Source: Cyanophora paradoxa CCMP329 (lineage: Eukaryota > Plantae > Glaucophyta). Taken from it: a stretch of DNA of 64,000 bases. Positions within the stretch are counted from its first letter, which is position 1. Each line of letters opens with the position of its first letter. This document shows, piece after piece, positions 1 to 52,086 of this stretch. Under the pieces are notes generated by a model, which was not told the DNA's origin, ran no database searches, and saw nothing but the letters and a program-made list of their open reading frames with translations. The stretch is taken from assembly GCA_004431415.1 (NCBI GenBank), contig QPMI01000459.1:62001-126000 (forward strand). Direction: 5' to 3'. The position numbers were made by a program, and so were the translations under genes.

Positions 1-1290
1 TCCTCGGTCTGGAGGGGGTATGAGATAGGACGCGTGAACGAAGGGGTACGGGAATGGAGAGTGGTACGCACGAACTGGCCCAGGTGCAGCTCGCGCTCGA
101 GAAGCATCGCGATCTGCGGGGGTACACGGTTCGCGCAAACGAGCGGCGGGCCAGGGTACGGGCGCGCGCCTTGATGAGCTTCATCTGCCCGAGCTTCTCC
201 TTGTCGTAGGCGTCGTACGCGCCCAGGACCTGAGGCAAAGTTAGCAGAACGGGACATGGCGAAGAAGAGGTGGGGGGGCGGGGGCGGGGGCGGGGCGGGC
301 CTTGTCTTGGAAGGCCTTGACGGTGATTTCGTCACCCTTGCCGTACGCCTCGTTCGGGTCCTCGATCGACGCCCGCATCTCCGCCTGGGGTACGTGTCAA
401 CAAGAAGGCGGGGAAGAAGAAGAAGGGGGGCGGACCCAGGGGTCGGCGGCGTTCTCCATGACGAGCTTGACGATCTCGGCGTGGATGATGTGGCCGGTGC
501 CGTTGAAGTCGAGGGCGCGGGCGACCTCCTCGAACTTGAGGTTTCCGTCCCGGTTCGTGTCGATCAGCGCCAGGAACGCCGGCGAGACCTTCGCGAAGAA
601 GCTCATGATCAGGCGGGCACAGATCTATCTCTTGCAGAGAAAGACGGAAAGAAAACACCTTTTCGAGGACGGGGAAGGCCGCCTTCAGCTCGGCCTTGGA
701 CGCGAATCCGTCCTTCGAGCGGTCGATCACCTCCATCACCTGCGGGGGGCAACAGTCTCAGACGAGGGCGGCGCGGCCAAGGGCGAAGCCTCTAGATCTT
801 TCCTCTAGATCTTTCCTCGCCGGGCGCGCCCGCCGCGTTTCAACGCCGCCGGGCCGCCTCGAGCTCACCCAACGTCTCAACTCTAGATCTTGCTCGGCCT
901 ACCGACCTTGTCGCGATCGAGTGCCCCTCCCCCGTCGCAGACTTTGGCTAACGTTCAACGGCCAATTATACACGGATCATGATCATATAACAGATTATAT
1001 TATAACGGAGACTTCGGCGTCGCAGATTATATAACAGAGCTACGTATATATATATACGTATGCAGCAGCTTATAATTAAGAAGTCTCATTACTACAGCTC
1101 CACGCCCCAAAACGTCTCTCTCTCCGGGCCCAGCTGATCATGAACAAGGCGAGCGGACCTTGCAATTGTCGTCGAGAACCCCGCGGCCGGCCTCGGCATA
1201 GACGTCGACGTACGCGTTGCCGTCGTTGGGGTCGAGCGCGTCCACGGCGATGATTCTCGATCGCGAATTCGAATTGCACGCCGCAATTGG
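1..1290 (-). pseudogene. Older, 5'-decayed copy of the EF-hand gene (continues left of window)
   Basis: Exons VMEVIDRSKDGFASKAELK and LIDTNRDGNLKFEEVARALDFNGTG match 27533-28290 with many substitutions. 1155-1290 is a scrambled version of the exon at 28985-29073. Confidence 0.75.
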
Positions 1291-2928
1291 GGGGGGGGGG
1301 AGGAGGGCGAAGGGGGGGGAGGAGGGGGGGGGCGCCGGGGGGAAGGATCAGTGCGGTTCCCGGCCGCGGGCCGGTGCTATATATGCATATATATGTCCTA
1401 TATATATATATATATATCGATATCCGGATCGATATCCAAGCTTCGGATTCTCCGTATCGATATCGCCGCCCCGCCGGCCCAGATCTAGACCGGCAGCTGC
1501 AGAACTTGTGCAATCCAGCTTGAGCTAGCTTGCAATTGCAATTGATCATGCATATGCATCCAATTGCAATTCCGAAGTTCATTGCAATAAAAGAAGAAAA
1601 CACATTACTTTTGAAACATACAATGTATATGAAATATTTGGAAACGGGGTAGCTGTAACGTAGGGCCCCCGTTTTCGGTCACTTACAAAATGACGAGTCT
1701 GCTCATCTCCCGATCCAGCTCCGAGCTCTTAACCGAGTGTTAGTGCATGCATGAGAGCCCGGAATTCGTTGTCAGAACTCGGAAAGAGCAGAATGCTGCG
1801 CTGAAAAAAGGACCGAACCCTTTTCTCGACTATCCCTTGCAGCGCCTGATCCCGTGATCGTATAGGAGCCGGACCAAGTGCATAAGAAAGCTCTTGCGAT
1901 GCTCGACAAAGCTTGTCATACATACCAGTGCTCGGGAAGCAGCGCGTGGCGCGCTAGGCCGCATCAAGTACCTGTTGTACCGAACGCGGAAAAAAAGAGC
2001 TCCTGCGAGTTTCGGCCGATATCGTGTTGCAGTACCCGTGCTTCATGATCAAGTACTAGTCGGCGAGCTAGCCGACAGGCTCGCTAGCTGGCCAGCGTAG
2101 CTAGGTGAGCTCCGGCGCCGGCTAGCGGCTTGCTGGACTTGCGCGCGTGGCGTCGCCAGCGCGCTAGCGCTAGCAGTACTAGTGCAGGCGCCGGCGCCGG
2201 CAGTGCGCGCGGGCGCCGACGCGGCGCCGCGGCAGGCAGTGCAGGCGCGGCGCCTGCAGTGCAGGCGCGGCGCTGCGCCGGCCGGCGGCAGTTGGCACTG
2301 CTTGGCAGGCGCGGCGCCGGCGCCCGGCATCATGTGGCATGCCGCATGCGCAGTGCGCACCCGGCCCGATGGCATGGCGTGGCGCCCGCGGGCCGCGGCC
2401 GGCGCGCGCGCGCGCGAGCGCTACGTGCTCGCGATCGACGTTGACTTCATGTGCGAGGCCATGCGCAGGGACCTAAACCTATAGCTAGCGCTAGCTCGAC
2501 GTCGACCTACCCCGTTTCCAACCGGCGGCCGGCCCAGTCAGAGCCCGATCGCGAGCAGAGGCCGCCGCGTGCTAGTCTATGAGATCTTGCAATTGGTATT
2601 ACCATCGAGGCTTGCAATCGCTTCTGCGACTGCCGCTTTCAGGCCTACACGATACTTATACCTTGCCCCTAGGCCTCCCTCCCCACCGCCCCCCTTTCTC
2701 CCTTCATCCCACCCCCGCATTGTATACGTTTCACGATCAGCGCAGACTGTGTGACAAAGAGACGTAGAAATATTAATATAGCCGCTGCGAAATCAGAGCA
2801 GCGCAGCGAAATGGAAGCAGTTATAATTACAATTAGGCGTCCAATGTCGGTTGTTGGTTGTTTGATTGCAATCACAAGGCAGAGAATTACAGCAAAGACT
2901 GTGCCTATCAAGCCTGCAGATGCCAAAC

Positions 2929-3870
2929 TCAGCGGCTTGCCATGCCTGACAAGTAACGCGACTGCGCCTGCATGCGCAGCTGGCGCTATAGCTAGGCGGC
3001 CACCTCAGCAGAGACGGATGCCTCGGCGACGATGGCTGAATCCGCCTCCGCCTCCTGTACATGTGCACGAATTCGAAGCAGTTTCAGCGCTCACAATTAT
3101 AATTAGGGCGCAAATGAAATCGCACATGTACTCACCAAGAGGAGCTCCTCGTCAAACTCGATTTCAGCCTGGATGTCTGCGGTCTCAAGAAGACCGTCCC
3201 CCGCGTCGCCCTCCAATGCAACGGCCTGCGCCGCGGCCCGTGAGAAATTAAAGCGAGGCGCGATCGTATATACGAATGTCGAAGGACAAAAGAAGGAAGA
3301 TGGACGCGCTTGTCCGTCGTTGTCCAACATCATAAGTTGCCCCATTGGAGTTCGCTGGCAGTGTCCGGAATAGTCGGATTTGAAGGATCCGTTGGCATGA
3401 CCGCATCTGCGCATCAAAGCGAAAGGGCTCGCGTCAACAAACGTGGCCATGGAACGGAGCTGGCAGCCGCGAACTCGAATTCGCGCGATCGAAAAACTTG
3501 GGCATTAATCAGACACGCACTGCCACCAGTTGTCGACGTGCCACCTGACTTTCCATGTCTGTTGATCAGGGGGCACCGCTGTCCGACTCCAGGTTTTTCC
3601 GTCCCATGTCGTCTGGTGGGTCGGGCCCTCCCAGCAGCCGAGATTACCGTCCGGATAGCACGTCCCGCCCATCGGCTGCGGAGGGGAAACCAGTTGCCCA
3701 TCTTCGTGCGCGTGTAGGACGCTTTGAGAGCGGGCTTCTGCTGCCGTCGGGAGTCGAGACTTGCCGGTGGGAGATGCGGCGATCTGAATTCGAAGTTGTG
3801 CACCTGGCACCCGGACCGTGACCCGGTGACCTGCTCGATGTCGAGGTCGCCGTTCTCGAGCGCTGGGCCG
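2929..3870 (-). pseudogene. 3' fragment of an intron-containing gene of unknown function (copy B 20665-~21600)
   Basis: Exon-like blocks AVALEGDAGDGLLETADIQAEIEFDEELLL, EAEADSAIVAEASVSAE and AQSRYLSGMASR* bounded by CAG acceptors and GT donors; the 5' part runs into repeats. Confidence 0.4.
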
Positions 3871-3912
3871 GGCTACCGTAGCACCGTACTAGTAGTCACT
3901 TAGTCATGATCA

Positions 3913-4032
3913 GTCGGGAGTCGGGACTCGGGAGTCGGGACTCGGGAGTCGGGACTCGGGACTCGGGAGTCGGGACTCGGGAGTCGGGACTCGGGACTCG
4001 GGAGTCCGACGGTCGGGAGTCGGGACTCGGGA
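3913..4032. repeat. 7-bp minisatellite (G/C)TCGGGA, ~17 units (copy B 21650-21769)
   Basis: Direct reading: gtcgggagtcgggactcggga... Confidence 0.9.
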
Positions 4033-4825
4033 TTAGAGCTGTGCTCGCTGGGGGGGGCCGGGCCCAGCGGCCGCTGAAGCCCGGCGAGCGGCGCCCGTCG
4101 CTGGCCCGTCGCTGAGGTGGGGGTACCGCCAAAACCTGTCGAAAAACTGCTGAAAACCAACCGAAAACCTATCTGTTCCGTTTAGTTTATTTCGTACAAG
4201 CTTTTAAGATGCGCGCGTACGCAAATGCAGATTTAATGCTTAGTTCCGCGAGCCATCTGTCAATTTCTGCGAGATAGAGGCCAGCTGCAGGCTGCTTTTG
4301 GGCGAAGCGGAGCGCCTGGATGCTCGAAAACAGTCGAAATTTAGCAAGATTAACAACGCCGACCTACGTCGACCTTCAGATGAGAAAAAAGCGGGATGGA
4401 GCTTTTTTTGGCGCCTGTCAGCCATAAAAAACGCTGAGCGAGGAGGTGTCGCTGGCGGAAAATGCCAAGCGTAGCGGCCGCTGGAACCTCGCGAGCGAAG
4501 CGACCACCAGCGACCACAGCCCTACTCGGGATCCGGGGACCGGAGTACGTGCCTAAACGTTTTTTTTGAAAGGGCCGATGGGCCACTGGGCCAGCATAAA
4601 ACAAATTAAACGAAGTCAGTGGCGACTCGGCGTCGGCGACTCAGTGCAAGTCACCCGTGTACCGTAGTACTGTACATCATGGCATGTGCATGTGCATTAC
4701 CCCCAAATTGAAAACCCGCACCATTGGTCCATTAATATTACCCACCCAAAAAACGGTCCATGCCAGCCTCAAACTTTTTGACCTTAAAACGCTTTAATTA
4801 AATTTCAAGAAAATTCAAGTTTGAT

Positions 4826-4908
4826 TTTTTTTTGAGAGACTACGGTGGGGCGAACCCCCCGTAGGTAGTGATATTAAAGACAACAAAGCAATCACAAATC
4901 AAAGATAC
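4826..4908 (-). mobile_element. 83-bp 5'-truncated poly(A) retroposon
   Basis: TSD AGTTTGAT at 4818-4825 and 4909-4916; T-run 4825-4833 (poly A on minus strand); absent from copy B; terminal hairpin with TTCG loop. Confidence 0.9.
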
Positions 4909-5256
4909 AGTTTGATGGGGGATCCGCGGCCGGAACTTTGACCTTGGCAAGTTAATGGCAACTTGCATAAAGTTGCATTGGCAACGTGTTGTTTTTTATC
5001 AAGCGCTCACTGAGTCAGCCTATCATAGTATGGCAGTGGCAAATCCACTGGCAATTGCAATGGCAGCTCACTGCCGTCAGCGGCGGTCAGCCTACTACTA
5101 AGTAGCCTAGTAGGCTAGCTGCCGGCGTGCCGCAGTGCACTCAGTGACTGCGGCAATGCAGCGGCATCAGGCTCAGCGGCTTCCATGATTAGTTCCATGA
5201 ACTTCCATCATGTTACCGTTTGAACGAGATTAAAACTTACATGATCGATCATGCTA

Positions 5257-5601
5257 CTGTAATTCGGGTAATATTTAAGACCCCAAAATAATTAGTAATC
5301 CCGGGGTTTGGTCGGTTTAGAAGGCTGAAAATAATTAAGAGTTGGCCGCGCGGAGCGCTTTAGTAGCGGCCTTTAGAAGGGGGTGGGCGCGGCGCGCGCG
5401 CCAGGGGGTTTAGATCTGTCGGAGCGTCCGAGAGCCCCCTCACACTATAGCTATACAGCTAGCTTCTCCCGCGCTGCAACTATGGCTGCGCTACGTACCC
5501 CCCAGCACCTCAAGTTTAGTATACGATAAAACTTTAGTAGTCGGGCCTCAAAACTTTGGTACTATAAAGATCCAGTATACTAAATATTTCCCGACTTACA
5601 G
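5257..5601. mobile_element. Tc1/mariner(pogo)-type MITE (copy B 22903-23245)
   Basis: Imperfect TIRs CTGTAATTCGGGTAATATTTA / TAAATATTTCCCGACTTACAG, flanked by TA on both sides. Confidence 0.75.
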
Positions 5602-5662
5602 TACATCATCAGCCTACATCCGATCATCATGGATTCATGGCTACATGATCAACTTATAATTA

Positions 5663-5914
5663 CCGTAAAACACTTGATTAATGCGCCCGATATTAATGCG
5701 TTTTTGGATCGACCCGGACTCCTCGTACGGGAAATAATGCGCCCCCAAATTAATGCGTTTTGGAGATTTCCGCCTGCGTTAGGGGGGTACATACCGCAGT
5801 TTTCTTAGCGTTTCGATATTAATGCGCCCCCCAATTAATGCGTTTTGCCAGCAGAAAACGCATTAATTAGGGGGCGCATTAATTAAGTGTGCGCATTACT
5901 TAAATGTTCTACGG
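5663..5914. mobile_element. Tc1/mariner-type MITE (copy B 23307-23558)
   Basis: Imperfect TIRs CCGTAAAACACTTGATTAATGCGC / GCGCATTACTTAAATGTTCTACGG; TA TSDs; internal ATTAATGCG repeats. Confidence 0.8.
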
Positions 5915-6463
5915 TACATGACTCAGTGATGGCAGACATTGGCAGCAGCTGCACAGCCTGCAGTGGCCCTGCACTGCGGGAGGCTGCAGCTAGTGCTTGC
6001 ATGGGGCCTTCCTTTGAATCATTTCTAAAACAGGGCCGGGCCCCAGCACAAAAAAAGTACCCGAAATTCAGACTTTTTCATGGGAATCATGGCCGATGAG
6101 GAACCGGCCGGGTTGGAAGCCGGTTAAAAAAACGTTTGAAATGGTTTGGTTGTAAAAAAAACCGTTAACGCGCATGTGCGTCGTGCACATACTGCAGGGT
6201 CCGAACCGGTTTCAGGTTCTTCATTCGCTTTGGGTGGAAGCTCTAAGTACTTGAGAGCCGAACGGCCTCCTATGAGCAGGGCGCCGGCGAGCCCTAGCCT
6301 CTAGGGAGGCTGAGGTTGTCCGAGCCGAAGGGCGAGTCTCGAGTCTCGATCGCGAGCTTCGTTGGAAAAACGCAAAACAACTTGAAAATTGAACTCGGGC
6401 CAATCGTGATCGACTTGCCGTGAATTGCCGAGACGCTGAATTCGGCAATTTAACGACTCGGCA

Positions 6464-9400
6464 TGCAAAAAGTCCACGCATCTAATGTTACTAAATGAAA
6501 AAGAAAACTAAATCTGCGGCCGCGGCCCCCGCCGCGGCAAAAGCAGCCCCACCTACAAAGGCGCCCGGCAGCAAGCCGACGGGCCAAAAGAAACAAAATG
6601 CAACCAAGCTGCAACTGAACAAGAAGGCCGGGGGCGCGGGACCCGCGGCGGCTGCGACGCTCCGTCTGGAGAATGTCTTTCCCCCCAGACTGTTCCCCGA
6701 AGGTGGCGACTTCATAGGGGACGAGCCGGCTATCAGGAAGCAGAAACCGGACGGGGTGCTGAGGACCATGACCTTCAACACGAGAGGGTCCAGCGCCTAC
6801 AAGCTGCAGCAGCTAGAAGAATTCTGCTGCCGCTGGGACGTCGATGTAGCGGGCGTGCAGGAGCTGTCGATGACAAGGCCCCAGATGGCCGCCGCCCTGA
6901 GGTCGAGAGGGAGGACCCGCTCCAGCCGGAAGGCGCGATAACGCACGGAAAGCTCCTGTACACGCTAAAATCAGGAGACGGAACGCGAGGGAGCGGCGCC
7001 GCTCTCTGGGTCGCGCCGCAATGGGTCAAGCACCTCACGACGAAGTACGAGGTCCAGGGCCGGCTGATCGGATTCGAGCTCCGCTTCAAAGGGAACCTCC
7101 AGCTCTTCGTGGCGAGCGTGTACATGCCCGCGTCCGAGAGCAAAGCTGCGCATCGCCAGGATCAGGAGAAGGTCGTCGAAGAACTGACGAAGATGTACGA
7201 CGACTTCTACGAGCGTGAAAACGCGCACCTGCTGCTCCTGGGAGACTGGAACTCGGTCCCGGTCCCGTCGAGCTCGCGCATCCGAAACGGCGCCCTGGCC
7301 CAGAGCCACAAAGCCGAACGGAAGTGGTGGCCCACGATGATCGACTCGTGGGACCTGCGCGACGCCGGGATGTCACACGCGGCGAAACATGATGACGGAA
7401 CTCTCTGCGGAGCACGCGAGATCACGCACCGCACCCCGCACGGAAGCAAGGGCCAAGGGGCGTCGGTCGGGGCGGCGGCGGCACCTGTGCCGTCAGACGG
7501 CGTAGACGAGTCAGAGGACGCGGAACGCGAAGCAGAGGAGGAAACGCCGGCTGACCTACCAAAAGATGCGCTCTGGCACGCGGCGCGCATCGATGCAGTG
7601 CTGGTCTCGGAATCACTGGATCACGCGCTCCTCAGCGCGCACACGTGCCCCGCGTGGGTCGATGCGCCGCACGACTCGGACCACTATCCAGCGTTCGCGG
7701 ACTTCGACCTGAAGGAGGCGGGCATGACAGCGCCGGTGGGCCCGAAGCCAGAACCGAAACCCGGGCCACCAGTATTTGACCCGGACGGCCTGAAGCGCAC
7801 ACAAAACGAGAAAGATGAGCTGAAAAGAGAGCTAAACAGGCAGCTCGGCGAAGCTGTCGGGGCGGACCTTGACGCCGTCGGCGAGGGCACGCCGGAAGAG
7901 CGTCTCGAACGACTGAGCCGCATCCACGCTGCGAGCGCGAGCCTTGTTCAGGAGGTGGCAAAGGAACATCTATGCATGAGGGGCCGAGGGGGGAAGCCGA
8001 CCAAGCCGCGCAACCTGCCGTGGCAGGCGAAGGCCGACGCCAGAGTCGCCCGCATTCTCGCTGCTTGGAGGAAGGAACCAGGCGGGATCCCGTCGGAGCT
8101 GACGGTCCAGGCGATCGAGAAGCTGCTGCACTACGTGACCGCCAGGGAAGGCCTCCGACCCTTCCCGCTCCGTCCGGCTGAACGGCGCCAAGCAAGGGCT
8201 GAGCAAGGCTCACCGCCGCCCGGATCCCCACATGCGCGCTCGAGCTCGCACAGCTCACAAGGCTCGCGCAGCGGTAGCCCCGCGCCGGTCCCAGCCGTAC
8301 CCCGGTCCCCAGGTACCCCCCCGGCTGATCAGGAAGAGGACTGGGCCGAGGTGCACCGGCGGCAGCTCAAAGAAGACTGGGCGACCTTCTTCCGGGAGCT
8401 GAAAGTATGGCGAAACCGGACGCGGCACGACCTGCAGAAAATCCGCCGGGCGCTCCAGGCGGAGGACGTTGAGAGGGCATTAAAAGAGAGGCTAGACAAG
8501 TTCATGGACGGCCGCCAGCTCGGATCCTATATAGCCGCGGTGCTAGAAAAGCCGCGAAACCGCCCGATCATGCACATCACGCGTGTGTCCAAGGACGGAA
8601 AAACGTATGAAATCTACACGGAGCCTGAGGAAGTGAAACGACTCCTAAAAGAGCACTGGCGGAAATGGTGCCGGCGCCGACGCCCACGCGTGGGCTGCAC
8701 CCCAGAGACAATACCGGAAAGCGCGCTGAAGGATAGCATGGGGAAAGAACTGCTCGACTTCTGGAGGCTGGAATACGAGCCAAAAGCATACGCGGATCCT
8801 GAACTATTCCGAAACGACATGTCGGTGCCGAGCGAAGGCGAGCTCGGCGACTACATTAAAACGCTAAGAAACACGGCAGCCGGGCCGTCGAACTTCTCGT
8901 ATGCTATGGTGAAGTTCCTATGGGCGCCGGTGCCCAAGCCGAAGCCCAAAGACGGTAAGGGCGACGAGGCCGGTGGCCCAGCGCCGGAGGGCCCGAGCCC
9001 AGCCGACGAGAGCGCCGAGGAGGCCACGGAAGAGGAGCCCGTACACTGGGGCCGGAAGCTGCTGCTCTCGCTGGTGGCTGAAGCGATCCGCCTCCGGGAC
9101 CTGCCGGATGCCGTGTGTCAGGGCAACATCCTCGGCATTACTAAGAGCCGGGAGTGGGACGGGGATATCGAAAATAACCTGCGACCGATCACCCTGCAGG
9201 AGGTGGCCTTGAAGCTGACCACTGGCCTCCTGAACGCGCGCCTGTCCCGGACAATCCATCAGAACGGGCTCCTGAAAGGGGCCAACTACGGCTTCAGACC
9301 TGGTTGCTCGACGGACGACGCCCTCCACGTCTTTAACGCAGTCCTCGAGGACGCGAAGGAGTTCAAGAAGCCCCTGTACATCCTGCTGCAGGATATCAGG

Positions 9401-12400: not shown

Positions 12401-13943
12401 ATGCCGGCAGTGCTGACGATCGAGGGACCGACCGGGATAGTCAGGCGAGTCGAAGGCGACCCTCGGCGGCACGCCGCTGTGCTTCACGCGCACCACACGC
12501 ACTTCGCGTGGGCGAACCAGCTCAAGGCCGGGGAGTGGCTACGGCTGCCAGTGGATCACGGCGCAGTATACGATCAGATGGCTATGGGGCCCCGCCGAGT
12601 CGGCGTGAGCCGAGAGAGCAACTGCTTCCGGGGTACGCATATGAAACTCGTTTTGGGTACGGTAGCAACGGCCCTCGTCCGCAAGCGAGACGCGCCCGAG
12701 CTCTACAGCGAAGTGAACCCGGCAGGACTCTGTGCGCTCTGCAGCACACGGGAAATCGATGGCGACGGCCGGCCCCAGCTTGTGACTGGGCCCGAGGAGA
12801 CGCTGGAGCACGTCCTCACCTGCCCCAGCACGGTGGCGACGGAGGCGCGCACCGCTGCGGAAGCACGCATCGCAGCGACGATCAGCGAGGCCCTCGAAGG
12901 CGCGCAGAAGCGGTCAGTGCCACACGCGCTCTCCAGCTCCCTGAAGGTCACGAGAGTAAACGACCCGACGCTCACGGCAGCTGAACGGCAGGCGCAGATG
13001 TGCGTGCTACGGGGGCTGCCCCCGGCGGGCCTCACCGATATGATTCGCGAGACCGTCACGGACGCCAAGAAAGCTGCCCAGGTCGTGCGCAAGCTGACGA
13101 CGACCATAGGCGAGCAGGCCCATAAAACGTGGGCCGCCAGATGCCAGGCGTACGCGGAGTGGGAGAAGGCGTGCGGGATCACGAAGGTCATGAAAGAACG
13201 TCGCGCCAAGGCGAAGCGCACTGAGGCGCGCGGGCGCGAGGCCGACGCGCCGCCTGACGATACGGCTGGCAACGCTCACAGGAAGCGCGCGGATCCGGAG
13301 CCCCGGCAGCGGGAACGCTGCAGGGAGTGCGGTGCCCTCGAGTCCCGCCACCAAGGCGGGGAAACCCTAGCCCTCTCACACCTGAGCTGCCCGCCAGACG
13401 ACTACGGCTGGGTCCGGGCTTCAGCGGCCATGCAAGTGTACGACCATACAAACAGGTATGCTTGGGGCGTGGGCACAAAGAGGGCGCGCCCGCGCTAGAG
13501 GGAGACACTGGGGGATTGCGGTCTGGGGGCGGGGCCGGAGGACGCAACACCAACAACTGGAGGCGGCGGAGGCGACGGCAGGAGGCGGCCAGTAGCCCAA
13601 TCTACTGGGGCTGGCGAGGAGCCTGGCACTTGGCGCGGCGAGGCCCTTGGGCAGCGCTGGCGGCGGACATACCATGATTGGGAGTCTTTTGTAGAGATAG
13701 GACCTCGTAGCCGGGAGTTTAGGTTAGTTTAGAAATCGATACAGCTAGCTTCCACATCATTAGTATTAGTTAGAAACCTCCTTAGCTAGATATCTAGACA
13801 CGAAACCTTCAAACCTTTCGTTCATTTTGTACTTTCTAAAGCACAGCATACGACGGTCCTCGATAGTATCTAGTCGGAGAGATTTATTGGGCGATGTGAA
13901 ACTCATTGTAGTTGTGTTGTGTGCTAATGCAAGAGATTGTTTG
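6464..13943 (+). mobile_element. Apparently full-length non-LTR retrotransposon (LINE), 7480 bp
   Basis: 16-bp TSD ATTTAACGACTCGGCA at 6448-6463 and 13944-13959; single copy at the empty site 24091-24106; encodes APE-RT-RNH. Confidence 0.97.
6495..13498 (+). CDS. LINE polyprotein: AP endonuclease + reverse transcriptase + RNase H + Cys/His motifs (~2330 aa; one frameshift near 6897)
   Basis: APE motifs TMTFNTRG, GVQE, LLGDWN, RIDAVL, SDHYP. RT motifs RPITL, QDIRRAYDSV, GLPQGGVESP, YADD (9803-9814), LLGV. RNase H motifs TDGS, NKAEL, TDSQ, KVKAH, NDAAD. C-terminal CALC...EHVLTC. Confidence 0.93.
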
Positions 13944-37440: not shown

Positions 37441-37512
37441 TACAACCGGTAGCTAATATAGTATCCGATGATAGTCGCATGCCATGATGCGCATGCGCAA
37501 GTTAGCTTTGAT

Positions 37513-42200: not shown

Positions 42201-45200
42201 TTATTCGCATGCATATTATCATATGCATAATGTTAACGTTGAGTGTGAAGTATCCCGCCCCGCAGTGATCGATTTAATGAGCGGACGCACGACGTATTCC
42301 GCAGAGAGCGGACTTTGGAGCTGCTGTCGTACTTGTACATGTCAGCTGCCTCAACGGTTGCGCTCGAGTACATCGACGTCGATTGCCCCGCAGATGCCGA
42401 TACCTGCATTCTCCTCTCCGCCTGCAGGCAACGGCGTTAGCTATAGGTTATGGGCCGGGGGCCCGGGCTTTTAAGCTCGAGAAAATGTTATCCTCAGCAG
42501 TACGCATTGGTCTTTGAAGCTCGCGCGAATGTTATCCCCGGCAGTGCGGATTGAGCTTATCTATATAATCATATAGAGTTATAAATATATACCTCAAGCG
42601 AAGCCTCAAGCGACTGAACTCGCTCCCTGAGAGCGGCCAGCTCCGACCCCGACGTTGATCCGGTCTAGCCAAGGAACAAAGATAATTAGCACAACGTTGG
42701 AATTATTAGGTAGAGTTTGATGACCTGTCGAGCAGCTTCCTCCGCCGCCGCACAGGCCTTGTCTGCGGCCTTCTTGGCGCCCTCCGCCTCGTGCTGCGTT
42801 TTTAGGGCGTACTCGAGCGACTCCTCCGCTTGTCTCGCTCTTGAACTTGATTCGCGCAACTGCATATGCATGATCACTAGTATACGCAGCTGCAGCTGCA
42901 GATGCTAGATATTTTAAAGTTGCAAGATTATGCATACGGCTGCACGGAGGATCTTGAGCTCCAATATTTGCTCATTTTGATCAGCCTCCACGTCGGCTAG
43001 GCGTGTTCGTTTTGCAGTTTTCGAAGAATTTTCGGCTGCAGCGGCCAGCTTGCGATCGAACTCCGAATTCTGGTTGCCAAACGACAGATTCGATGCGAGT
43101 TGATTCGAAAACCGTGCTCGATTATATTTAACGGTAAACGATCACCTGCGGGGCGGACGCCTGGTCCTGGAGGGAGCTGCGATGAAGAAGGGAAAGCTCC
43201 TCCATGCCCACCAAGGGGCCCGTCGGCCCTTGCGCCGCAATCCGCCCGTCCTAAAGCACACGCTCAAGGGTCGTAATTATAAGCGGAAGGGGGCGAAAGG
43301 CAGAATTGAAGGGCAGACTGAGTAGATCCGGATTTGGTACGGGGCAGGCAGGAAGCGCTGAAAGCCTGCGATGAGCTCATCGTGGCCGGCAAAGAGTCTC
43401 ACAACGCTCAGAATAACGTCCTCAGTGGTCAGCCTGCGCATTGCATTCGAACGCATGCACATAGAAATATAATGAGGCTTCATTAAGCGCACCCGCCGTC
43501 CTTCCAACGCTTGATCGTGTCGAGAAAGCCAGAGTAGCTGTGAGGGGCCTTGGCCCGAGCTTGGGCGAGGTAGTCCAACGCGTCCGATCGCGAGTCTGTG
43601 GTATCGATATTCTGATCCAGACGCTTGAATTCGCGCGAGTTTGTGCAACGGGAAATAGTGCTTGCAATTGGATCCATCTGCTCGAGCTCGGGTTCACGAA
43701 TCTCCGGATCCTGCTGTATCCAAAATCAGAACGGAAAAGCTCGAGATCTGCAGCGCTAGCGGCAGCGTAATCATAACGCACGTGGTGCTCACGATCTTCG
43801 GTCTTTTCCTTGCTTGCCTGGCCATTAAGCCCGGCCTCCAGATCTTTTGCGCCGCCGGACTTGGCACGATCAGCCGAAATCGCCTTGCCATTCTTCTGCA
43901 GGCCGATAGTTAAGGAATGCCGAACACAGGGACACAGCTTCCGTAACATCTAGATCTCACGAGCGCGCATCGAAGCCTTCGGGGGGCGCGTAGGAGGCCC
44001 ACCTCGCGCTCGTAGCGCGCCTTGTCCGCCGCCGCCTTCGCCTCGTACGGCTGCAAAGATCCATCGTGTCACAACAAGATAATGATCAACCGACTTGAAA
44101 TATGCGATCAGGCGCCTCGCATGCGCACCGCCTTCTCTTCGGCTGTCATCTCCCTCCACTTCTCGCCCTGTGAATATGAATATATAATCAGGCAGTCGGA
44201 AGGGCCGTCATCGACGCGCTGTACGTAAACGTATACGTATACGCGAAACGAAAATGATGCTCACGCAAATCTTCGCGAGGTCGGTGCTGCTGACGCTCAT
44301 ATTGTTCTGCTTGAGTTTCTCGCGGCTCTCTGGCAACGAGCAGACGCCGTGACACGCATGCTTCAACGGTTGCAAATCGAGGAACAGCGAGGACAGAAAG
44401 TCGGACCAGTAAAGAAAATGGCGTAGGAGTTCGAAGGGCGCTTTGGGGCTCCGGGATCCCTCGGGGCAGGCTTGCCCCCCTTGGGCTTCTCCTCCTCTTC
44501 GCCGCCCTCGCCCTTGCGCATGCTCGCCTTTGCCTCCTTCGCGCCGCCGGCCTCGCCGTCCTTCGCAGAAATCGCCTTGCCGCTCTTCTGCTTTAAGAGT
44601 ATTTATAAGAATCAGAAAGGACGATTCGTTCGCGAGCATTCATCTCGCATTTTCAGGCGCGCCTCGAAGCCCTCGGGGGGCGCGTAGGAGGCCACCTCGC
44701 GCTCGTAGCGCGCCTTGTCCGCCGCCGCCTTCGCCTCGTACGGCTGCGAAGATCCATCGTGTCACAACAAGATAATGATCAACCGACTTGAAATATGCGA
44801 TCAGGCGCCTCGCATGCGCACCGCCTTCTCTTCGGCTGTCATCTCCCTCCACTTCTCGCCCTGTGGATATCAATATATGATTAATCAGGCAGTCGGAAGG
44901 GCCGTCATCGACGCGCTGTACGTATACATAAACGTATACGTATACGCGAAGCGAAAATGATGCTCACGCAAATCTTCGCGAGGTCGGTGCTGCTGACGCT
45001 CATGTTGTTCTGCTTGAGTTTCTCGCGGCTCTCTGGCAACGAGCAGACGCCGTGACACGCATGCTTCAACGGTTGCAAATCGAGGAACAGCGAGGACAGA
45101 AAGTCGGACCAGTAAAGAAAATGGCGTAGGAGTTCGAAGGGCGCTTTGGGGCTCCGGGATCCCTCGGGGCAGGCTTGCCCCCCTTGGGCTTCTCCTCCTC

Positions 45201-48200
45201 TTCGCCGCCCTCGCCCTTGCGCATGCTCGCCTTTGCCTCCTTCGCGCCGCCGGCCTCGCCGTCCTTCGCAGAAATCGCCTCGCCGCTCTTCTGCTTTAAG
45301 AGTATTTATAAGAATCAGAAAGGACGATTCGTTCGCGAGCATTCATGATCATCTCGCATTTTCAGGCGCGCCTCGAAGCCCTCGGGGGGCGCGTAGGAGG
45401 CCACCTCGCGCTCGTAGCGCGCCTTGTCCGCCGCCGCCTTCGCCTCGTACGGCTGCGCATGCGAAGATCCATCGCGTCAGTTCACAATGTAATTATATAA
45501 TTTTTCGACCACAATTTGCGCACTGCTTTTTCCTCGGATGACATGGCTACCCACTTTGCGCCCTGAAAATAGAAAAAGGTTCGCAGTCGCCAGGTCTAGA
45601 TTCGGACAGGATGCAATAACATTAAAAAAAAGAGCGTACCGTGAGCTTCCCGAGATCTCGGAAGCTCGCACCGGGGTTCTCCGCCTTGATCGAATCGCGC
45701 TTGTCTGTACGCGGCAGGCGGGCGTCAGTTTGAAAGCTTGCAATTGATCATGAGTAGTGATGAAAACTTCCCGAAATAAGGAGCTCGCGATCGAGCGCAC
45801 CGGTCGAAAAGAAAGCGTAGGCGGTCGAGGGCCGCTTGGGCGCGTTCGGGTCCTTCGCCGCGCATGCGCTTTTCCCGCCCTTCGCCTTGCTGGCACTGTC
45901 GTTCGCGTCCGTCGTCTGCTCGCCTGTCAGCATCGGCGTCGCGAGAGATCTAAGCCAGCATTTCAGATCACACGTGCACCTTCGATTTCTCCTTCGGCCC
46001 CTTCGGCTTCTTCTCCTTCGCGGCCGCCGGCTGCGCGGCGTGCAGCTGCGCACGCATTAATATCGGGTGTTGCTTTCGAGGCGATCACAGAAGTTTGATT
46101 AAAATCTCGAGCCTTCGGAGCGGGGGCGGATCCGGAGGGCGAGGGCTTGGCGATCTGGAAAAGGGCGTTGTCCGCAGGGGCTGCTGTAGGGGCCGAGTTC
46201 ACAGCTGGGCTCAAGGCTGGCGCAGCCCGCGCAGCAAGTCCGGAGGCCGAGGAGGCCGGCGGCGGCGGTTCGATAGCGACGTCGACTGAGGAAGCGCCGG
46301 CGCCTTCAGCCTTCGAATTTGCCATCACCGACTCCGAGGCCTGCGCAATATTTAATGATATAAAACGCATCGCCTGTTCGCGCGTGACTTACGCGACCTA
46401 AAGCTACCTTTGGGTTGGGCTTCGCTGGCATGGATGAGCTTGCAATTGCGGCATCCTGTCGCGAAGGTGAATAGATGAAGTTTAATTTCGACTTCGCTAA
46501 ATCAAAGGCAGCTGCAGGAAAGAAGCGATTCACAGGAGAAGAAGCGCTCTGACGAGCGCGCGCACCGGGGCAATATCGAGCTTTCGCGGTATTTGCGGCG
46601 GAGGCTTCGCGATGAGCAACGGCTTGACTTTCTGCTTCGTGCTCAGGTCCGCGCACGTGACGCTCAGGCTCGGAAGCGCCGAGCTTGCAATTGAGGCTGC
46701 CGATGTACTCGCCGATCGAGAGCTGGCTCTCGCATCGATATCGATAGCAGCGGCGTGCTTTCCCGAGGCGACGGCGCCGGCCGCGGCCGCCTGCGGGGCC
46801 TTCTGAGCCTCGTCGCGATCGCCCTCTGCTGCGAAACTCTGCAAAAAAAAGCGCGGGAACAGATAAGGTGCCGCCGGATCCGGAAAGCCTCAGCCGCGCG
46901 CGAAGAAAGTGATTTCTATGACTCGAGATCGGTGCCGTCTAGCCCCTAGGCCTTGGAAGGCACGAATGGACGCGATCGAATTTTGATTTTGAACGCTGCA
47001 TGCAGCTATATAGCTAGCGCTGTATATAAAAAGGCGCACGTGCACCTTCGCATTTGTGGGGCCCGCGGGTGCCGCGATGGGCGTCTGCGCGCGAAAGAAC
47101 GCCGCAAACTGTCAGGAGCAACAGAATCCCAGCTGCAGGAAACACTAGTAAAACGGGGTCCGAACTGATCTAATTACGATCTAATTGCGACCTAATATAT
47201 TAGATCACAGTTCAGTCGGCCCGGCCCGGCGATCTAATACGGATCGTATTGCAATTAGATCGGAGTTAGATCGGGGCTTGCGCCGCCTATAGCTGATAGC
47301 TGAGCCCTATAGCCTTATAGACCTATAGCCCTTAGAGCCCCTAGAGGCCCTTTTAGCCTTTTAGGTCGAGCCCGCCGCGGCGCCCGGCCCCGCGCGCCGC
47401 CCCGGCCTCCCCGCCCTAAGCTCCCCTCGAGCGCCCCTCGAGCTCATGATCATGAACACACGCTCTTGATAATTAAACAAATTACGTATGTATGCACGTG
47501 ACCCGAGCGCGTGGGCGAGAAGGCCGTTCTCAATGTGGCCACGAGGGCGTCCCTGGCGTCCCTAGGCGCCAGATCAATCCCTGGAATGCGGGGAAGCTAA
47601 AATACGCTTGTATGCGCATTGAAGAGACATTTAAGATTATGTATAAAGCTTAAGAGCAGCGCCGTGGGCTGGAGGGCGCGCACCAGAAAAGAGCCGAGCT
47701 TCGCTGTAGCTTCGCTTGGACAGCTCGCCTTCGAAATCTGGACAAGCAGAACTCGAGATCAGATGCAGAATGGTGGCGATACGAAAGAGATGGTGGCGAG
47801 CTCGGCTACGTGGAGGTCGCGTAACTGGAGGAGCGGCGGAGGAGCCGCTCCCGCGCGGCAGTTTCGCGAGCACCTGAGGCGAGAATCACGGCGATGCGCA
47901 GAGATTAGGGCGGGGGCGCACGGGTGCGGCCGCGCGGCCATGAAACTGCGGCCGCGCGGCCGCGCTCGGGCGCGGCGTGGGCACGGGCGCGGCTCGCATG
48001 CAGCAGGCTCGACAGGAGAGCAGGATCTCGCATGCTTGGCGGGCCTGGCGGCGGCGCGGGCGACTTGCGGCGCAAGCTCAGCAATACGAAGTTTGATAAG
48101 GATGCGCATTGGCCGCCGCCGCCATATCTTTCTCCCTCCAGCTCTCCTTCCCTTCCCCTCTCTGCTTCCCTGCTGCCTAGATAGCTGTATAATTATAATG

Positions 48201-48622
48201 CGAGTGATCTGATTGCTACATGTACACGGCAGCGCAAGGGTGGAGCGGCGGGGGGCGGGCGGGGGCGGCGGGGGCCCGCGGTCGGCGGCCCCGGATCTAA
48301 CTGAGATCTAACTAAGACCTAATTGCAGTTAGATCGCAATTTGGTCCTTACGCCCATTTTTAGGTCGCAATTAGATCGGGGGCCGATCTAATATATTAAG
48401 TCTCAGTTAGGTCGTAATTAGATCAGTTCGGACCCCTTTTTACTAGTGAAAAGATGGGCCGGGCCCACGCGCGGCCGGCCGCGGCTAGCGCTCGTACGCG
48501 TGACGCCGGCTTTAGGCCGCGAGCGCGCGCACCGGAGCGCTGTTTCTCTGCGGAGGCTTCACGACGATCAGCTTGCAATTGCCTTTCTTCTTCGAATTCG
48601 TGTTGCAATTGGGGCCCGCCAT
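39245..48622 (-). CDS. Probable single gene: 3x HMG-box + PAH domain + coiled coil + C-terminal HECT E3 ubiquitin ligase
   Basis: HMG: KDPNAPKRPSTAYAFF...GAKW...PYEAKAAADKARYERE, and twice RDPGAPKRPSNSYAIFF...GEKW. PAH: DALDYLAQ...FLDTIKRWK...VVRLFAGHDELIAGFQRFLP. HECT: GPCREFF, YRFIGALIGRAL, LTDANKRDLVRL, MR|EGF, RTCFDE (catalytic Cys), DFNDA*. Several exon junctions unresolved. Confidence 0.65.
43960..45475. repeat. ~700-bp tandem duplication of an HMG-box exon cassette
   Basis: Near-identical exons and introns repeated at a ~0.7-kb period. Confidence 0.9.
47143..48448. mobile_element. Non-autonomous CACTA/EnSpm DNA transposon, 1306 bp
   Basis: TIRs CACTAGTAAAACGGGGTCCGAACTGATCTAATTACGA / TCGTAATTAGATCAGTTCGGACCCCTTTTTACTAGTG; 3-bp TSD AAA; subterminal GATCTAA repeats. 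Confidence 0.93.
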
Positions 48623-49015
48623 CGCCCGGTCGACCCCGGCTGAGAACCCGAATGTGCGGATCGCGGCGGCTGCAGAGAATTCGAAGGGCGCGTACGAAGG
48701 CCGGGCGCTGGCCCAGCGGCGCTGCGGGGCTACCGAAATCTGGAATGGAGGGGGGGATGGAGCGGATCGACGCCAATTGAAGTCGAATAATATTAATACA
48801 ATATATTCGAGCTGGTCGTGTCGCGCGCAGACGCTGAGCTCGCGCCCATCGATGTGGAGGGGGCGACGGACGTCGGCGTATCGCTCCGCTTCGTCCCGCC
48901 AGTCTTTTTTTCAACCCCGGGCTCGTGAACCCCTACAGCTAGCAGACTCGAGAGATTTGACATGAGCGCCGCGCGCTCGAATATTGAATATGCATTCACG
49001 TATACTTATTCAAAT

Positions 49016-51266
49016 TTACGCCTTCGACGTCGCGATCGAGGCCGCGACCTCGCCCCCGATCTCGTGGGCGCGGAGGGCGGCGCGCAGGACGGCGTGCTCG
49101 TCCGGCGGCCGCGGCATGTTCGCCGCCGTCGTCCCCGGGCCGGCGGCGCGGCGGCAGGCCCCCAGGAGCCCCGCCTCGTCCCCGGGGTCCACGCCCAGGG
49201 CGTCCAGGGTGACGGGGAGCCCTACGGCGGCGCAGAAGAGGGCGGCGCGGCGCGCCTCGGCCTCGTCGCCCTCCAGGCAGAGCTGCGCCAGCGTGCAGAA
49301 GGCGACGGTCTCCCCGTGCAGGCTGCCCCGCGTCTCCGGCAGCCTGCGGGAAGGAAAGACAACCTTAGAGCGTTATAAAAAGATTAGTCAGTTATCCAGT
49401 TAGCGGGGCTCGCCAGGTGAGGCCGTTGTGGAGGGCGTGGGCGAGGGCGAGGCCGCCGCTCTCGAAGCCGAGGCCGCTCAGGAGCACGTTCGCCTCCACG
49501 ACCCGCTCCACCGCCTCCGTCACTGTGCGTGTGGATGTTACATGTCAGCGTTTAGCTCTTGGGCCGGCCTCGGGAAGGAAAGGGAATTAAAACACAGGGA
49601 GCAAGCGCGAAAAGGGGGCCGTGCTGCCGAGGAAGCCCGCTTTAAATTGTCAGCGTTTAAGGTTCGGAATGGGCCGGCCTCAGAAAGGAAATTTGAAGGA
49701 AAAGCAGAGGGGGCGATGGGGCGCGCCCTGCTTGCGCTCGACGTCGGCCGCGGCCTGCTCGCCGTGTTCGTAGAGAATGTCCCTGGATCGAATTAAAAGT
49801 CTGATTAGTTCGAACTCAAGCTTCGGGATCGATCGCCGATTCGGACCGGCAGAGGGCGGAGAGGGCGACGGCGCTCGCCGTCGGGCGCCCGCCGACCTCG
49901 CTCCGCGCGTGCGGCGCCCGCCGGCTGCGCAAACACCAGATCGAACATCAAACGTTAAAATTACCATCAGTCATACAGAGAGAGAGAGAGCGCTTCGAAT
50001 TCGCGCGCTGACGCACCAGGCGTCGGCCTCTGCGCGGGCATCGATGCCGACCGGAACAAGAGTGAGCGGTTCGAATTCGCGACGCAGAGAGCGGCAGCCC
50101 GGCCCGGCGCGCGCGCGGTCAAAGCTAGTAAAACGGTCACCGTAGAAGGTCGCCATCGCGTCGCCCATGCCGGCCACAAGAAACCGCCGCGGTGCCTCCG
50201 CGATCACCTGCGCATTAATTTCGAATTTCAAATTTTAGAAAATTTGAATTAGCTAGGTTCTCAACATTTTCGCGAGCGGGGGGGGGGCTTTAATTTTAAT
50301 TTCCCCGGGCTTCCGTTTTCGCACCTCCGTGTCGACAAGCACCAGGTGCGGGTTGTTGCGAAAGTGGAGAACCTGCGCGCTTTCACTTGCCTCAGAGCGC
50401 GACTGCAAATCTATATTGAGTATACTTGTATCCGTGTGCACTCGCCTCTTGGAAGCTGCCATCGGGGTGATACATGCCGGACAGCGCGGAGCACGGGGCG
50501 TCATTCCTGATCGCTTCTGTTAGCTACAGCGGCGCCGACCGGCAGCGAGCGTTTAACGGTAACGCTAACACTTGTAATAAGAAATTTGCAATTGTATAGA
50601 GTACTGTTCCATGATATATTTTCGCGCACGCGGCGAGCGTGGGCGCGATCACGCAGGGAACGTCAAGGGCGCTGGCGACGGCCTTGCCCGAATCCAGGCA
50701 TTTCCCTCCACCGACCGCCATCACTGCGCCCGCAAAGCTTCAATCAGCTCCGGCAATTTAAATTTATAGCATGACTGCTGCTGCGCGAAATTTACGGTAA
50801 TCGACGGGCTCGCGACGAAAGAACTCAGAAACCATATTGACCTCTTCCCAGCTGCGAGAAAGATCGAAAGAGACCAGGCGCGGAAATCGCGCTGCATTTT
50901 AAGCGGCCACCTGCACTCGCCGCCGAAGTCCACGACGACAGCCCGCGCGCCCGCCTCCTTTAGGGACCGAACGATCCGCGCCTCGTAGGCTGAGCGCAGC
51001 GCTGGGACGATCAGCACGCCCGCGGCTGCCGAGGCATGCGCATCGGCGCTCCGCCGACAGGTGAGGGGGCGCAGGAAGCAAGCCATACTGCCGAGGAGGC
51101 CCGCTTTCATAACGAACTTGCCGGGGCTGCTGAAGATCGCGGCCCCCGACGGCCCATACGCTGACTTCGGATCGAATCGCTGCGCAAGCTGCTGCGCATG
51201 CGCATGCGACTTTTCAAGGTCGCTGGCAGGCGCAGAGGCCATGCTTCTCGGTACGTGCGAGGCCAT
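49016..51266 (-). CDS. gldA: Glycerol dehydrogenase (bacterial-type, family III metal-dependent alcohol dehydrogenase), intron-rich
   Basis: [120 protein letters not shown]. Confidence 0.9.
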
Positions 51267-52005
51267 GCCTGAGCTCGGATTGCGATCGGGGTTTGAGCTC
51301 GCCGGATCGAACGAGCTCGATCGAGCAGGAAATTGAAAATTGGACTTTTTCAAGTTTCTCCGAAATTCTCGAGCTCCTGCGTGCCTAAATTTTCTCCTCT
51401 CGATCGCGAGCCCTAGCTATCTATAGGCCTGGCCTAAATTGTCTCCTCTCGAGCTCTCATGATCAGTCTATACTGTACGCAGTGCGAGCTCGATCCACTT
51501 TGCTACGCAGTGCGAGCTCTACGTATACTATGCGGGGATGCTTCGCGCCGCCGCCCGCCTGCACGCCCGCGGGGCTGCAATCATGATCGCGAGCGATGCC
51601 GCGGCCGTCTCATCGGCAATCGCGAAATCGAAATTCACAGCAGCGACTCGAGCTCCGGCCATCGATCGTGGCGGCGCGAGCTCATGCGGATGCAGGAGGA
51701 TTTCGCGGCTCCCGCACCCTCGCGATCGGCGCCGGCGCCGGCCGCAATGAGGAGGATCGGGGCTCCGGGCGCGGGGCGCCCCCGCCCCGCCTCGAATTCC
51801 GTCTGGTTCCATCGCTGGCCCTCGGCATCGGGGCTGCGGCGTGCACCTTCGCGGCTGCGGAGGACGCTGAGGCGCTTAAGCCTAGTAAGGAGGAGCCAGC
51901 GCTGGCGCCGGGCCCCGGCCCGTACGCGTGCACGTGGAGCTCGGCGTGCTAGTAAGCTCAGCCTACCAAGCTGGCCGAATATTAATTATGCTTTATATAA
52001 GTATT

Positions 52006-52084
52006 ATTTTGAGAGACTACGTACGGTGGGGCGAATTTAAACCCCCCGCGGTCCCCCCACGGGCCGTATACGTAGGTGGTGATT
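52006..52084 (-). mobile_element. Decayed relative of the 4826-4908 retroposon
   Basis: TTTTGAGAGACTAC[GTAC]GGTGGGGCGAA[TTTAAA]CCCCCCG...TAGGTGGTGAT aligns with 4830-4872. Confidence 0.75.
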
Positions 52085-52086
52085 CC

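Follow-up and report, generated by a model that had tools for sequence, protein, structure and literature searches.

Stereotyped micro inverted triplications in the non-coding DNA of Cyanophora paradoxa, probable excision footprints of a cut-and-paste transposon

Described excision systems and the resident element

In the footprints of Ac/Ds and Tam3, as in the P nucleotides of V(D)J joining, hairpin-type processing leaves inverted copies of the flanking DNA. Tc1/mariner elements leave TA, two to three element nucleotides, and a second TA at a fixed TA target, with neither a hairpin nor an inverted copy of the duplication. The stretch of Cyanophora paradoxa DNA analyzed here, a 64-kb window, holds in its non-coding parts hundreds of 6- and 8-base insertions that follow one fixed pattern, a 3-base word (x), its reverse complement (rc(x)), and the word again. 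These insertions resemble the Tc1/mariner scar in being stereotyped and in keeping both duplications with a few terminal nucleotides, a parallel to the C and G that mark the 8-base class, and the Stowaway/mariner scars serve as the comparison (PMC4561436). The likeness to hAT-type excision by Hermes, and to Transib and the MULE Muta1, lies in the hairpins formed on the flanks, their off-centre opening by the host, and the inverted flank copies found between the kept duplications; that the flanks form hairpins which the host then opens is established in the hAT, Transib, RAG, and MULE families (PMC5499845). In the hAT-type and V(D)J systems, however, the duplication measures 8-9 bp and the product differs between events, whereas the window shows 3 bp and, for each class (+6 or +8), in essence a single product, at densities that reach 8-10 per kb of non-coding DNA. 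In the precise excision of mPing, the repair register is likewise set by microhomology from the duplicated target (PMC4561436), but that repair removes the element with one duplication and is scarless, whereas the annealing on a hairpin-derived rc(x) proposed below would add 6 or 8 nt. Short template-switch mutations (the four-point model) and DUP-TRP/INV-DUP events are formally direct-inverted-direct triplications as well, although their lengths and switch points vary and they carry no constant letters, in contrast to the 3-nt word and ordered C and G of the window.

The CACTA, or En-Spm (CMC), elements, among them En/Spm, Tam1, Tgm9, Tdv1, and Jordan of Volvox, make a 3-bp duplication at variable targets with little specificity, end in CACT(A/G), and carry subterminal repeats (PMC4423477, PMC3193017). 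One element in the window shares all of these features:

47143 to 48448, plus strand: non-autonomous CACTA-type DNA transposon, 1306 bp, ends CACTAG...CTAGTG
47143 to 47206, plus strand: left terminal inverted repeat, 64 nt, 92% complementary to 48385-48448
48385 to 48448, minus strand: right terminal inverted repeat, with subterminal repeats from about 48294
47140 to 47142, no strand: 3-bp target-site duplication AAA, partner at 48449-48451

The termini fit 5'-CACT(A/G)...(C/T)AGTG-3', with CACTAG at 47143 and CTAGTG ending at 48448, and AAA stands on both sides, a match that for a single copy has a chance probability of 1 in 64. Besides the terminal inverted repeats there are subterminal arrays, with GATCTAAT/TAGATC repeats on the left reaching about 47270 and 12 TAGATC/GATCTA motifs within about 155 bp of the ends. 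The element holds no long open reading frame and is multicopy by contig depth, with this one CACTA copy in the window: CACTA-like pairs with a 3-bp duplication number 24 in the window against 25 expected, only one being real, and no further element is apparent among the remaining inverted repeats of 35000-52100. Its own flanks have G at -1 and A at +1, not the C and G favoured at the insertions. Known plant CACTA footprints are heterogeneous, 0 and 4 bp for Tgm9 (PMC4015899), whereas the window product is stereotyped, and this variability counts against the reading proposed below, as do the single copy in the window and its flanks. Our literature search found no stereotyped x-rc(x)-x product or genome-wide build-up for CACTA elements, and no account of the form genome-wide or in Cyanophora.

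Two insertion forms and their distribution

With duplicated copies masked, the window contains 323 x-rc(x)-x nine-mers (x of 3 nt) against 26.5 expected, a 12-fold excess that makes the recurring signature described in the first-pass annotation real and much stronger than noted there. In the unmasked 64-kb window, 438 non-low-complexity nine-mers compare with 31 +/- 7 in local second-order Markov shuffles, and a fifth-order Markov model predicts 100; a chance origin of the excess is excluded. Among control patterns, enrichment over shuffles was 3x for the word around its reversal (x-rev-x), 5x for the word around its complement (x-comp-x), 5x for x-x-x, and 1.5x for x-rc-rc, so that the signature also exceeds simple tandem triplication (12x versus 5x). 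A second form, x-C-rc(x)-G-x, occurs at 77 sites, of which 54 remain after masking of duplicates against 3.5 expected, as in the following example:

5007 to 5017, no strand: TCA-C-TGA-G-TCA, second form

Swapping the two letters (x-G-rc(x)-C-x) gives only 9 sites versus 3.1 expected, and the one-sided forms are likewise few, with 20 versus 10.7 for C alone and 25 versus 10.3 for G alone. Among all spacer combinations, only x-rc(x)-x and x-C-rc(x)-G-x stand out; x-x and x-CG-x are barely enriched (1.3-1.4x) and forms with a partial inverted copy are weak. A picture of variable repair was rejected, since x-x, x-CG-x, partial copies, x-rc-rc-x, and the one-sided C or G forms all lie near background. 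This pattern indicates a single-register outcome, as annealing on rc(x) predicts.

Both forms are specific to words of 3 nt. Words of 2 nt are enriched only 1.8x and 2x, and a 2-nt class, exemplified by AC-GT-AC, was rejected as weak; words of 4 nt give about 10 unique cases versus roughly 2 expected, possibly a minor class. The 3-nt specificity and the C and G letters match the 3-bp duplication and C...G ends of the resident CACTA element. The order C then G is identical read on either strand, which is expected from two symmetric transposon ends and not from one polymerase run. The flank bias is two-fold symmetric: of the 323 masked sites, 143 have C at -1 and 129 have G at +1, against a base frequency of about 0.31, and the choice of x across these sites is broad and very diverse; the two together are typical of the target of a dimeric transposase.

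The signature is present across all non-coding parts of the window. Exact motifs account for about 5% of its unique non-LINE sequence, or about 14% when forms with one mismatch are included. The density of 8-10 per kb in non-coding DNA falls to 0.7 per kb in a recently inserted LINE, which bears out the scarcity that the annotation had reported for this element and makes it an internal negative control:

6464 to 13943, plus strand: LINE, with a 15-bp target duplication; a sister repeat unit lacks the LINE

Its 7.5 kb contain 5 motifs, 0 of them of the C/G form, and a protein comparison of its open reading frame with a 96% identical relative gave gene-model gaps only and no 2-residue indels. 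Motif run lengths in the window have a second mode at 15-16 nt, comprising about 5% of runs, and 22 runs are at least 14 nt long. This proportion matches random re-hitting of three usable registers and upholds the earlier proposal that palindromic chains arise by repeated rounds. We read the following chain as two rounds at one site:

40047 to 40062, no strand: chain of 16 nt, period 6, palindromic unit

Paralogous sites, polarity, and short reads

In alignments of diverged paralogs, all 6-bp indels follow x-rc(x)-x exactly or nearly, the class amounting to about 3 events for every 100 substitutions, in agreement with the claim that these insertions form a major indel class. Every string quoted in the first-pass annotation is present where it was placed, and the sites compared are as follows:

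45343 to 45351, no strand: TCA-TGA-TCA, exact, clean 6-bp indel against TCA at 44640
45454 to 45462, no strand: TGC-GCA-TGC, exact, clean 6-bp indel against TGC at 44745
35930 to 35938, no strand: CTA-TAG-CTA, exact, clean 6-bp indel against CTA at 36183-36185
48190 to 48198, no strand: TAA-TTA-TAA, exact motif inside the CACTA element
603 to 611, no strand: TCA-TGA-TCA, exact motif, compared with TCA at 17996 and 28142
35854 to 35862, no strand: CAA-TTG-CAA, exact motif, equal in length to its paralog between anchors, no net indel
52019 to 52024, no strand: AC-GT-AC, in a retroposon 3' module
44922 to 44930, no strand: near-fit GTA-TAC-ATA, a 6-bp insertion of TATACA after GTA, one mismatch from x-rc(x)-x
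44878 to 44881, no strand: P-nucleotide-like variant, 4 nt inserted as the reverse complement of the adjoining AATC

Six of these had been offered as paralog examples, and the three at 45343, 45454, and 35930 stand as exact, clean 6-bp indels. The motif at 603-611 is ambiguous, a plausible indel that depends on the alignment, since its comparison with 17996 can be written as a 3-bp gap with two mismatches or as a 6-bp gap with a 3-bp gap. The sites at 35854-35862 and 52019-52024 fail as presented: the former was rejected as a demonstrated indel because the length between anchors is the same in both copies, and the latter was rejected as evidence for the class because it can just as well be read as TACG simply duplicated in tandem. 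The near-fits at 44922-44930, 35874-35883, and 52032-52041 are near-fits only. At 44878-44881, the insertion yields a 10-bp palindrome lacking a third copy.

A fourth exact case comes from reads and joins the three from window alignments: in three short-read runs, a double-depth paralogous contig lacks 6 nt at 48188, within the CACTA element. Polarity is resolved at one of the four. At 45343-45351, the inserted TCATGA lies in copy 3 of a three-copy tandem repeat, sister copy 2 reads simply TCA, and the 6 nt are also missing from the diverged copy 1 as aligned, which makes the change an insertion. At 45454-45462, copies 1 and 2 both have TGC only, and the site lies inside a short-read contig with no listed difference.

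Contigs from four short-read runs (2012, 2019, 2024) cover the unique stretch 45428-47184, which holds 22 motifs, with no listed difference, and the contig pieces listed for three of the four span it whole, again with no difference. The motifs are thus present in independent short reads. Over 43800-49799, the four runs revealed no variation at motif sites, and all of them carried the same differences. An artefact of long-read assembly or sequencing could draw on the observation that near-identical duplicate copies differ mainly by 1-bp homopolymer changes resembling long-read errors, but the reproduction of 45428-47184 in runs of three different years makes such an origin scarcely credible.

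Excision footprints and rival explanations

We consider it probable, at roughly 0.65, that a cut-and-paste DNA transposon, one that makes 3-bp duplications and has ends of the form 5'-C...G-3', left the micro inverted triplications as footprints of its excision. The most likely candidate is a CACTA (EnSpm/CMC) family of the kind represented at 47143-48448. The scars keep both duplications around a few extra nucleotides, the duplicated length being that of the resident element, and the extra nucleotides correspond to an inverted flank with or without element termini, as the middle word is rc(x) and the C and G are the element's first and last bases. The chemistry of the hairpins, the annealing, and the tie of the CACTA family to the scars are inferred. 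Insertion would convert L-x-R into L-x-[element]-x-R, where L and R are the flanks. On excision, the transposase would leave a hairpin on each flank, either exact (L-x/x'-L', with x' for rc(x)) or with the element's first nucleotide at its tip (L-x-C-x'-L'), and host nucleases would open each of them at a point a few nucleotides to the 3' side of the tip. The two 3' overhangs would then be parts of the same virtual sequence and so would anneal on x', with fill-in giving L-x-x'-x-R (+6) or L-x-C-x'-G-x-R (+8). C. paradoxa is reported as probably haploid (PMC6704402); such a host would have no homologue from which to restore the element, and end joining would scar most excisions. The scars would pile up in neutral DNA and decay through point mutation.

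The first-pass annotation had pointed to local template switching by an unusual polymerase or repair pathway, that is, a transposon-independent host process in which the last 3 nt are copied in reverse by snap-back synthesis, through a polymerase or an end-joining pathway, and synthesis resumes 3 nt back. Inverted micro-insertions produced by template switching are an established class of mutation, and the inverted copy of adjoining sequence, the spread of the signature over all non-coding parts of the window, and the breadth of x are all in keeping with it. We also observed no occupied and scarred pair: the window paralogs show empty versus scarred states, and the four runs over 43800-49799 are invariant at the sites. 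However, template switching would be expected to show variable lengths and switch points with every base locally templated, whereas the length is fixed at 3 nt with no spread and the C and G of the +8 class are untemplated. These constant, strand-symmetric letters have no natural source in a single synthesis run, and the reverse-order and one-sided forms lie near background. Moreover, once rc(x) had been made, the 3' end would find nothing complementary on the original template at which synthesis could restart ahead of x. The fixed length, the constant C and G, the symmetric flank preference, and a resident CACTA transposon with a 3-bp duplication and C...G ends fit excision footprints better than template switching, and we regard the latter as unlikely and do not favour it.

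It is similarly unlikely that the scars come from no mobile elements at all and record a host hairpin-forming break-and-join pathway, through a domesticated transposase or an unknown nuclease, across the non-coding DNA; if true, several per cent of the genome would be the work of a kind of mutation for which no precedent is known. In its specific form, a host-encoded and possibly domesticated transposase-like nuclease would make 3-bp staggered, hairpin-forming breaks genome-wide with no element at the site. Symmetric target preference and hairpin-type products would equally follow from such an enzyme, and the very high density is easier to accommodate if no element need visit each site. A break with no prior insertion has only one x, though, so that a third copy would call for fill-in of both ends beforehand, and in that case nothing would template the constant C and G. 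No such gene was seen in the window. We consider this version quite doubtful. The direction of change could also be reversed, with existing palindromic chains, which selection may have kept as binding or methylation sites, losing 6 nt by microhomology-mediated deletion. The 3-nt direct repeats within every x-rc(x)-x could mediate such a loss, and polarity is resolved at only one site. Deletion cannot, however, produce a 12-fold excess of the long form, and the excess of about 1090 6-mer palindromes in the window is, by our own count, about what the nine-mers and their decayed forms supply. With the sister copy at 45343 lacking the insert, the outgroup copy doing likewise as aligned, and the great diversity of x arguing against a sequence-specific function, this alternative is very improbable.

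If the excision reading holds, small insertions in this genome would come chiefly from cut-and-paste transposition, and its non-coding DNA would be built in part from excision scars. Hundreds of thousands of transposition events would then have left a fossil record that could be read for target preference and, cautiously, for relative age. The use of the scars as an age clock, suggested earlier, would measure transposon activity, which is not necessarily constant. The two stereotyped products would also constitute sequence-level evidence that CACTA-type excision passes through hairpins on the flanks, offset by 0 or 1 nt. We know of no biochemical demonstration of flank-hairpin excision by CACTA transposases, and of none for such offset chemistry in the superfamily; the former counts against the reading. 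For this alga, aligners, gene predictors, and indel models should then expect palindromic insertions of +6 and +8, the former in frame. A density of 8-10 exact scars per kb is, to our knowledge, far above any footprint report, which also counts against the excision reading. By rough arithmetic, about 300 exact scars in about 44 kb with one resident copy would require no more than about 1e-6 excisions per copy per generation.

Abundance and forms of the inverted triplications

The window is rich in the nine-mer x-rc(x)-x, in which a 3-nt word, its reverse complement and the word again amount to a net gain of 6 nt, and such copies are here called scars, as they are read below as transposon excision footprints. 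Non-low-complexity nine-mers were counted against Markov expectations.

Counts of x-rc(x)-x (x = 3 nt)
Whole window: 438 observed, 31 +/- 7 expected (local second-order Markov shuffles)
Duplicate copies masked: 323 observed, 26.5 expected (local second-order Markov shuffles)
Duplicate copies masked: 323 observed, 100 expected (fifth-order Markov, all 6-mer frequencies kept)

The excess over shuffled controls that the first-pass annotation had anticipated is thus present, and it is larger than that of simple tandem triplication (12-fold after masking vs 5-fold for x-x-x), with the other control forms also far below the main form (x-rev-x, 3-fold; x-comp-x, 5-fold; x-rc-rc, 1.5-fold). At other word lengths the signal is weak (k=2, 1.8-fold; k=4, 16 hits, ~10 of them unique). 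The ~10 unique 12-mers at k=4 (e.g., 2158, 14518, 16674, and 55112) compare with roughly 2 expected, and may have been left by a family whose duplication is 4 bp long. One-mismatch forms are in excess as well (1303 vs 653 expected), and the excess of 6-mer palindromes, ~1090, is by our own count about what the nine-mers and decayed forms would supply. Exact scars occupy ~5% of unique non-LINE sequence, or ~14% when one-mismatch forms are included.

Motif density by region
Non-coding stretches: 8-10 per kb
LINE insertion, 6464-13943: 0.7 per kb
GC-rich sequence, 28338-32000: 0.3 per kb
Interior of a non-autonomous CACTA element, 47143-48448: 4.6 per kb

The motif is indeed scarcer in the young LINE, as had been proposed, but its low count there is not attributable to age alone, because this element is coding sequence as well as young.

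When x-a-rc(x)-b-x was tested for every spacer a and b of 0-4 nt, the sole additional form to stand out was x-C-rc(x)-G-x (net +8), with 77 occurrences in the window and 54 after masking vs 3.5 expected; it is likewise specific to k=3. The reverse order, G then C, occurs nine times, and one-sided forms are close to background (C only, 20 vs 10.7 expected; G only, 25 vs 10.3). The C-then-G order holds on both strands, since the reverse complement of the form has the same form. Loose-repair variants (x-x, x-CG-x, partial inverted copies, and x-rc-rc-x) reach only 1.3- to 2.5-fold, and there is therefore essentially one product per class.

The words are diverse, with moderate preferences (TCA/TGA, 3.2-fold; CAA/TTG, 2.8-fold) and avoidance of ACC, AAA, and CCC. 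The flanks of the main form are symmetrically biased, with C at -1 in 143 and G at +1 in 129 of 323 sites. The number of period-6 tracts drops geometrically with length, starting at 9 nt, before a second mode of 19/385 runs appears at 15-16 nt. This mode is about as expected from random second hits with three usable registers, which supports the earlier suggestion that chains arise by repeated rounds.

Paralog comparisons and sequencing reads

Every string quoted in the first-pass annotation is present at its coordinates, and global alignment of the paralog pairs showed that its examples differ in quality. Three of them (45343, 45454, and 35930) are clean 6-bp indels in which one copy has an exact x-rc(x)-x and the other has x. 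The site at 603 fits such an indel, but its alignment is ambiguous; the motif at 35854 is exact, but the net length is the same as in the paralog; and AC-GT-AC at 52019 is explained equally well by a plain tandem duplication of TACG. The contention that this is a major indel class stands, as every 6-bp indel in diverged pairs either matches x-rc(x)-x exactly or departs from it by one mismatch, and these events number about 5-7 for 198 substitutions. The chance that a random 6-nt insertion takes the exact form is 1/4096. Upstream of 45343, copies 2 and 3 of a triplet are near-identical and copy 1 is diverged; since the extra TCATGA is confined to copy 3 of the three, the polarity there is, from sequence comparison, that of an insertion.

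Four sequencing runs, from samples of 2012, 2019, and 2024, were compared over 43800-49799 (6000 letters). All four show the same differences there and no variation at motif sites. The unique stretch 45428-47184, which holds 22 motifs, is reproduced by the four runs without any listed difference and is spanned whole by the pieces listed for three of them, so that these 22 motifs are present in independent short-read contigs. At 48188, where TAA-TTA-TAA stands in the window, 6 nt are missing from a paralogous contig of double depth. An assembly or sequencing artefact is practically excluded.

A CACTA element and the proposed origin of the scars

A scan of the window for inverted termini bordered by equal 3-mers yielded one outstanding element.

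Features of the element
47143-48448: CACTA-type element, 1306 bp, ends CACTAG...CTAGTG (first base C, last base G)
Terminal inverted repeats: 64 nt, 92% complementary
Target duplication: AAA/AAA
Subterminal TAGATC/GATCTA motifs: 12, within about 155 bp of the ends

CACTA elements duplicate 3 bp at a variable target and carry CACT(A/G) at their ends (PMC4423477), and this element shows their defining non-coding features. In contig depth it stands several-fold to tens-fold over the single-copy level.

We consider it probable, at roughly 0.65, that the scars are transposon excision footprints. In the hAT, Transib, RAG, and MULE families it is established that host enzymes open flank hairpins (PMC5499845), and our scheme of hairpins and annealing is an inferred one. 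Excision of an x-flanked element would leave hairpins L-x/x'-L' and R'-x'/x-R (L and R, flanks; x', rc(x)). Opening anywhere a few nucleotides 3' of the hairpin tips would give two 3' overhangs, both part of x-x'-x, which could anneal on x' and be filled in to L-x-x'-x-R. A first nick one nucleotide inside the element would place a C at the tip on each strand, and the same annealing would give L-x-C-x'-G-x-R. This single scheme would account for the existence of the two forms, for their 3-nt specificity, for the order of C and G, for the fact that these letters come together or not at all, for the single register, and for the symmetric target preference. The 2019 Cyanophora paradoxa assembly (99.94 Mb, PacBio reads) was reported as more likely haploid (PMC6704402), and in a haploid cell, where no homologue can serve as a repair template, end joining would be favoured and most excisions would leave a scar.

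The first-pass annotation had attributed the triplications to local template switching and an unusual polymerase or repair pathway. A run of template switching explains none of the last five of these features, and a transposon-free polymerase or repair process is accordingly unlikely. That a host nuclease is responsible appears improbable. Deletion or selection is a very doubtful source, and the deletion reading is disfavoured in general because deletion cannot produce the 12-fold excess of the long form. Against the footprint reading itself, plant CACTA footprints have been reported as variable (PMC4015899). No locus was both occupied and scarred among the window paralogs or in the four runs at 43800-49799. 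Scar density of this order is, to our knowledge, without precedent. These points, together with the putative nature of hairpin chemistry in CACTA elements, hold our estimate at its present level. Inverted nucleotides in excision footprints are of a known kind; the literature searched yielded neither a stereotyped x-rc(x)-x or x-C-rc(x)-G-x scar nor a genome whose non-coding DNA is saturated by such scars.

Repeat structures of the window

Self-alignment of the window gave a repeat map with four structures.

Repeat structures
1-6463 matching 17389-24106 and 13944-18192 matching 24091-28337: tandem repeat of ~10 kb (segmental duplication of ~10.1 kb)
6464-13943: LINE, interrupting one unit of the ~10-kb repeat
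43843-45594: three-copy tandem, ~700 bp
54013-55882 and 56371-58242: identical copies

Divergence of the ~10.1-kb duplication in 1-28337 is uneven (1.6% in the first 2.6 kb, <=0.05% in the rest), a pattern suggestive of gene conversion or of duplication in a staggered manner. The LINE carries RT and RNase H by Pfam and a 15-bp target duplication, and is missing from the sister unit (24091-24106); its ORF has a relative with 96% identity over the RT region searched (EukProt entry), and upstream of its long ORF the sequence is split into several frames. Two retroposon insertions, 20048-20378 and 4826-4908, each lie in one copy only of the duplication, begin with a T run, i.e., a minus-strand poly(A) tail, and have target duplications of 15 bp and 8 bp, respectively; the shorter shares a ~40-nt 3' module with 52000-52045. 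A 7-nt minisatellite, AGTCGGG, with 17 copies at 3912-4032 and 21649-21769, is kept in both duplicate units.

The triplet at 43843-45594, an exon-intron module tandemly tripled inside a large gene, has a mosaic history, as its 5' part is common to copies 2 and 3 and its 3' part to copies 1 and 2. The stretch 32000-35000 (~80% G+C) has degenerate internal repeats, long overlapping ORFs on both strands, few scars, and no Pfam match. Between near-identical duplicates, nearly all differences are changes of 1 bp in the length of G or C runs (e.g., 15665/25813, 17302, 17318, 17369, 56767, and 56892), and these resemble errors of the long-read consensus more than mutations.
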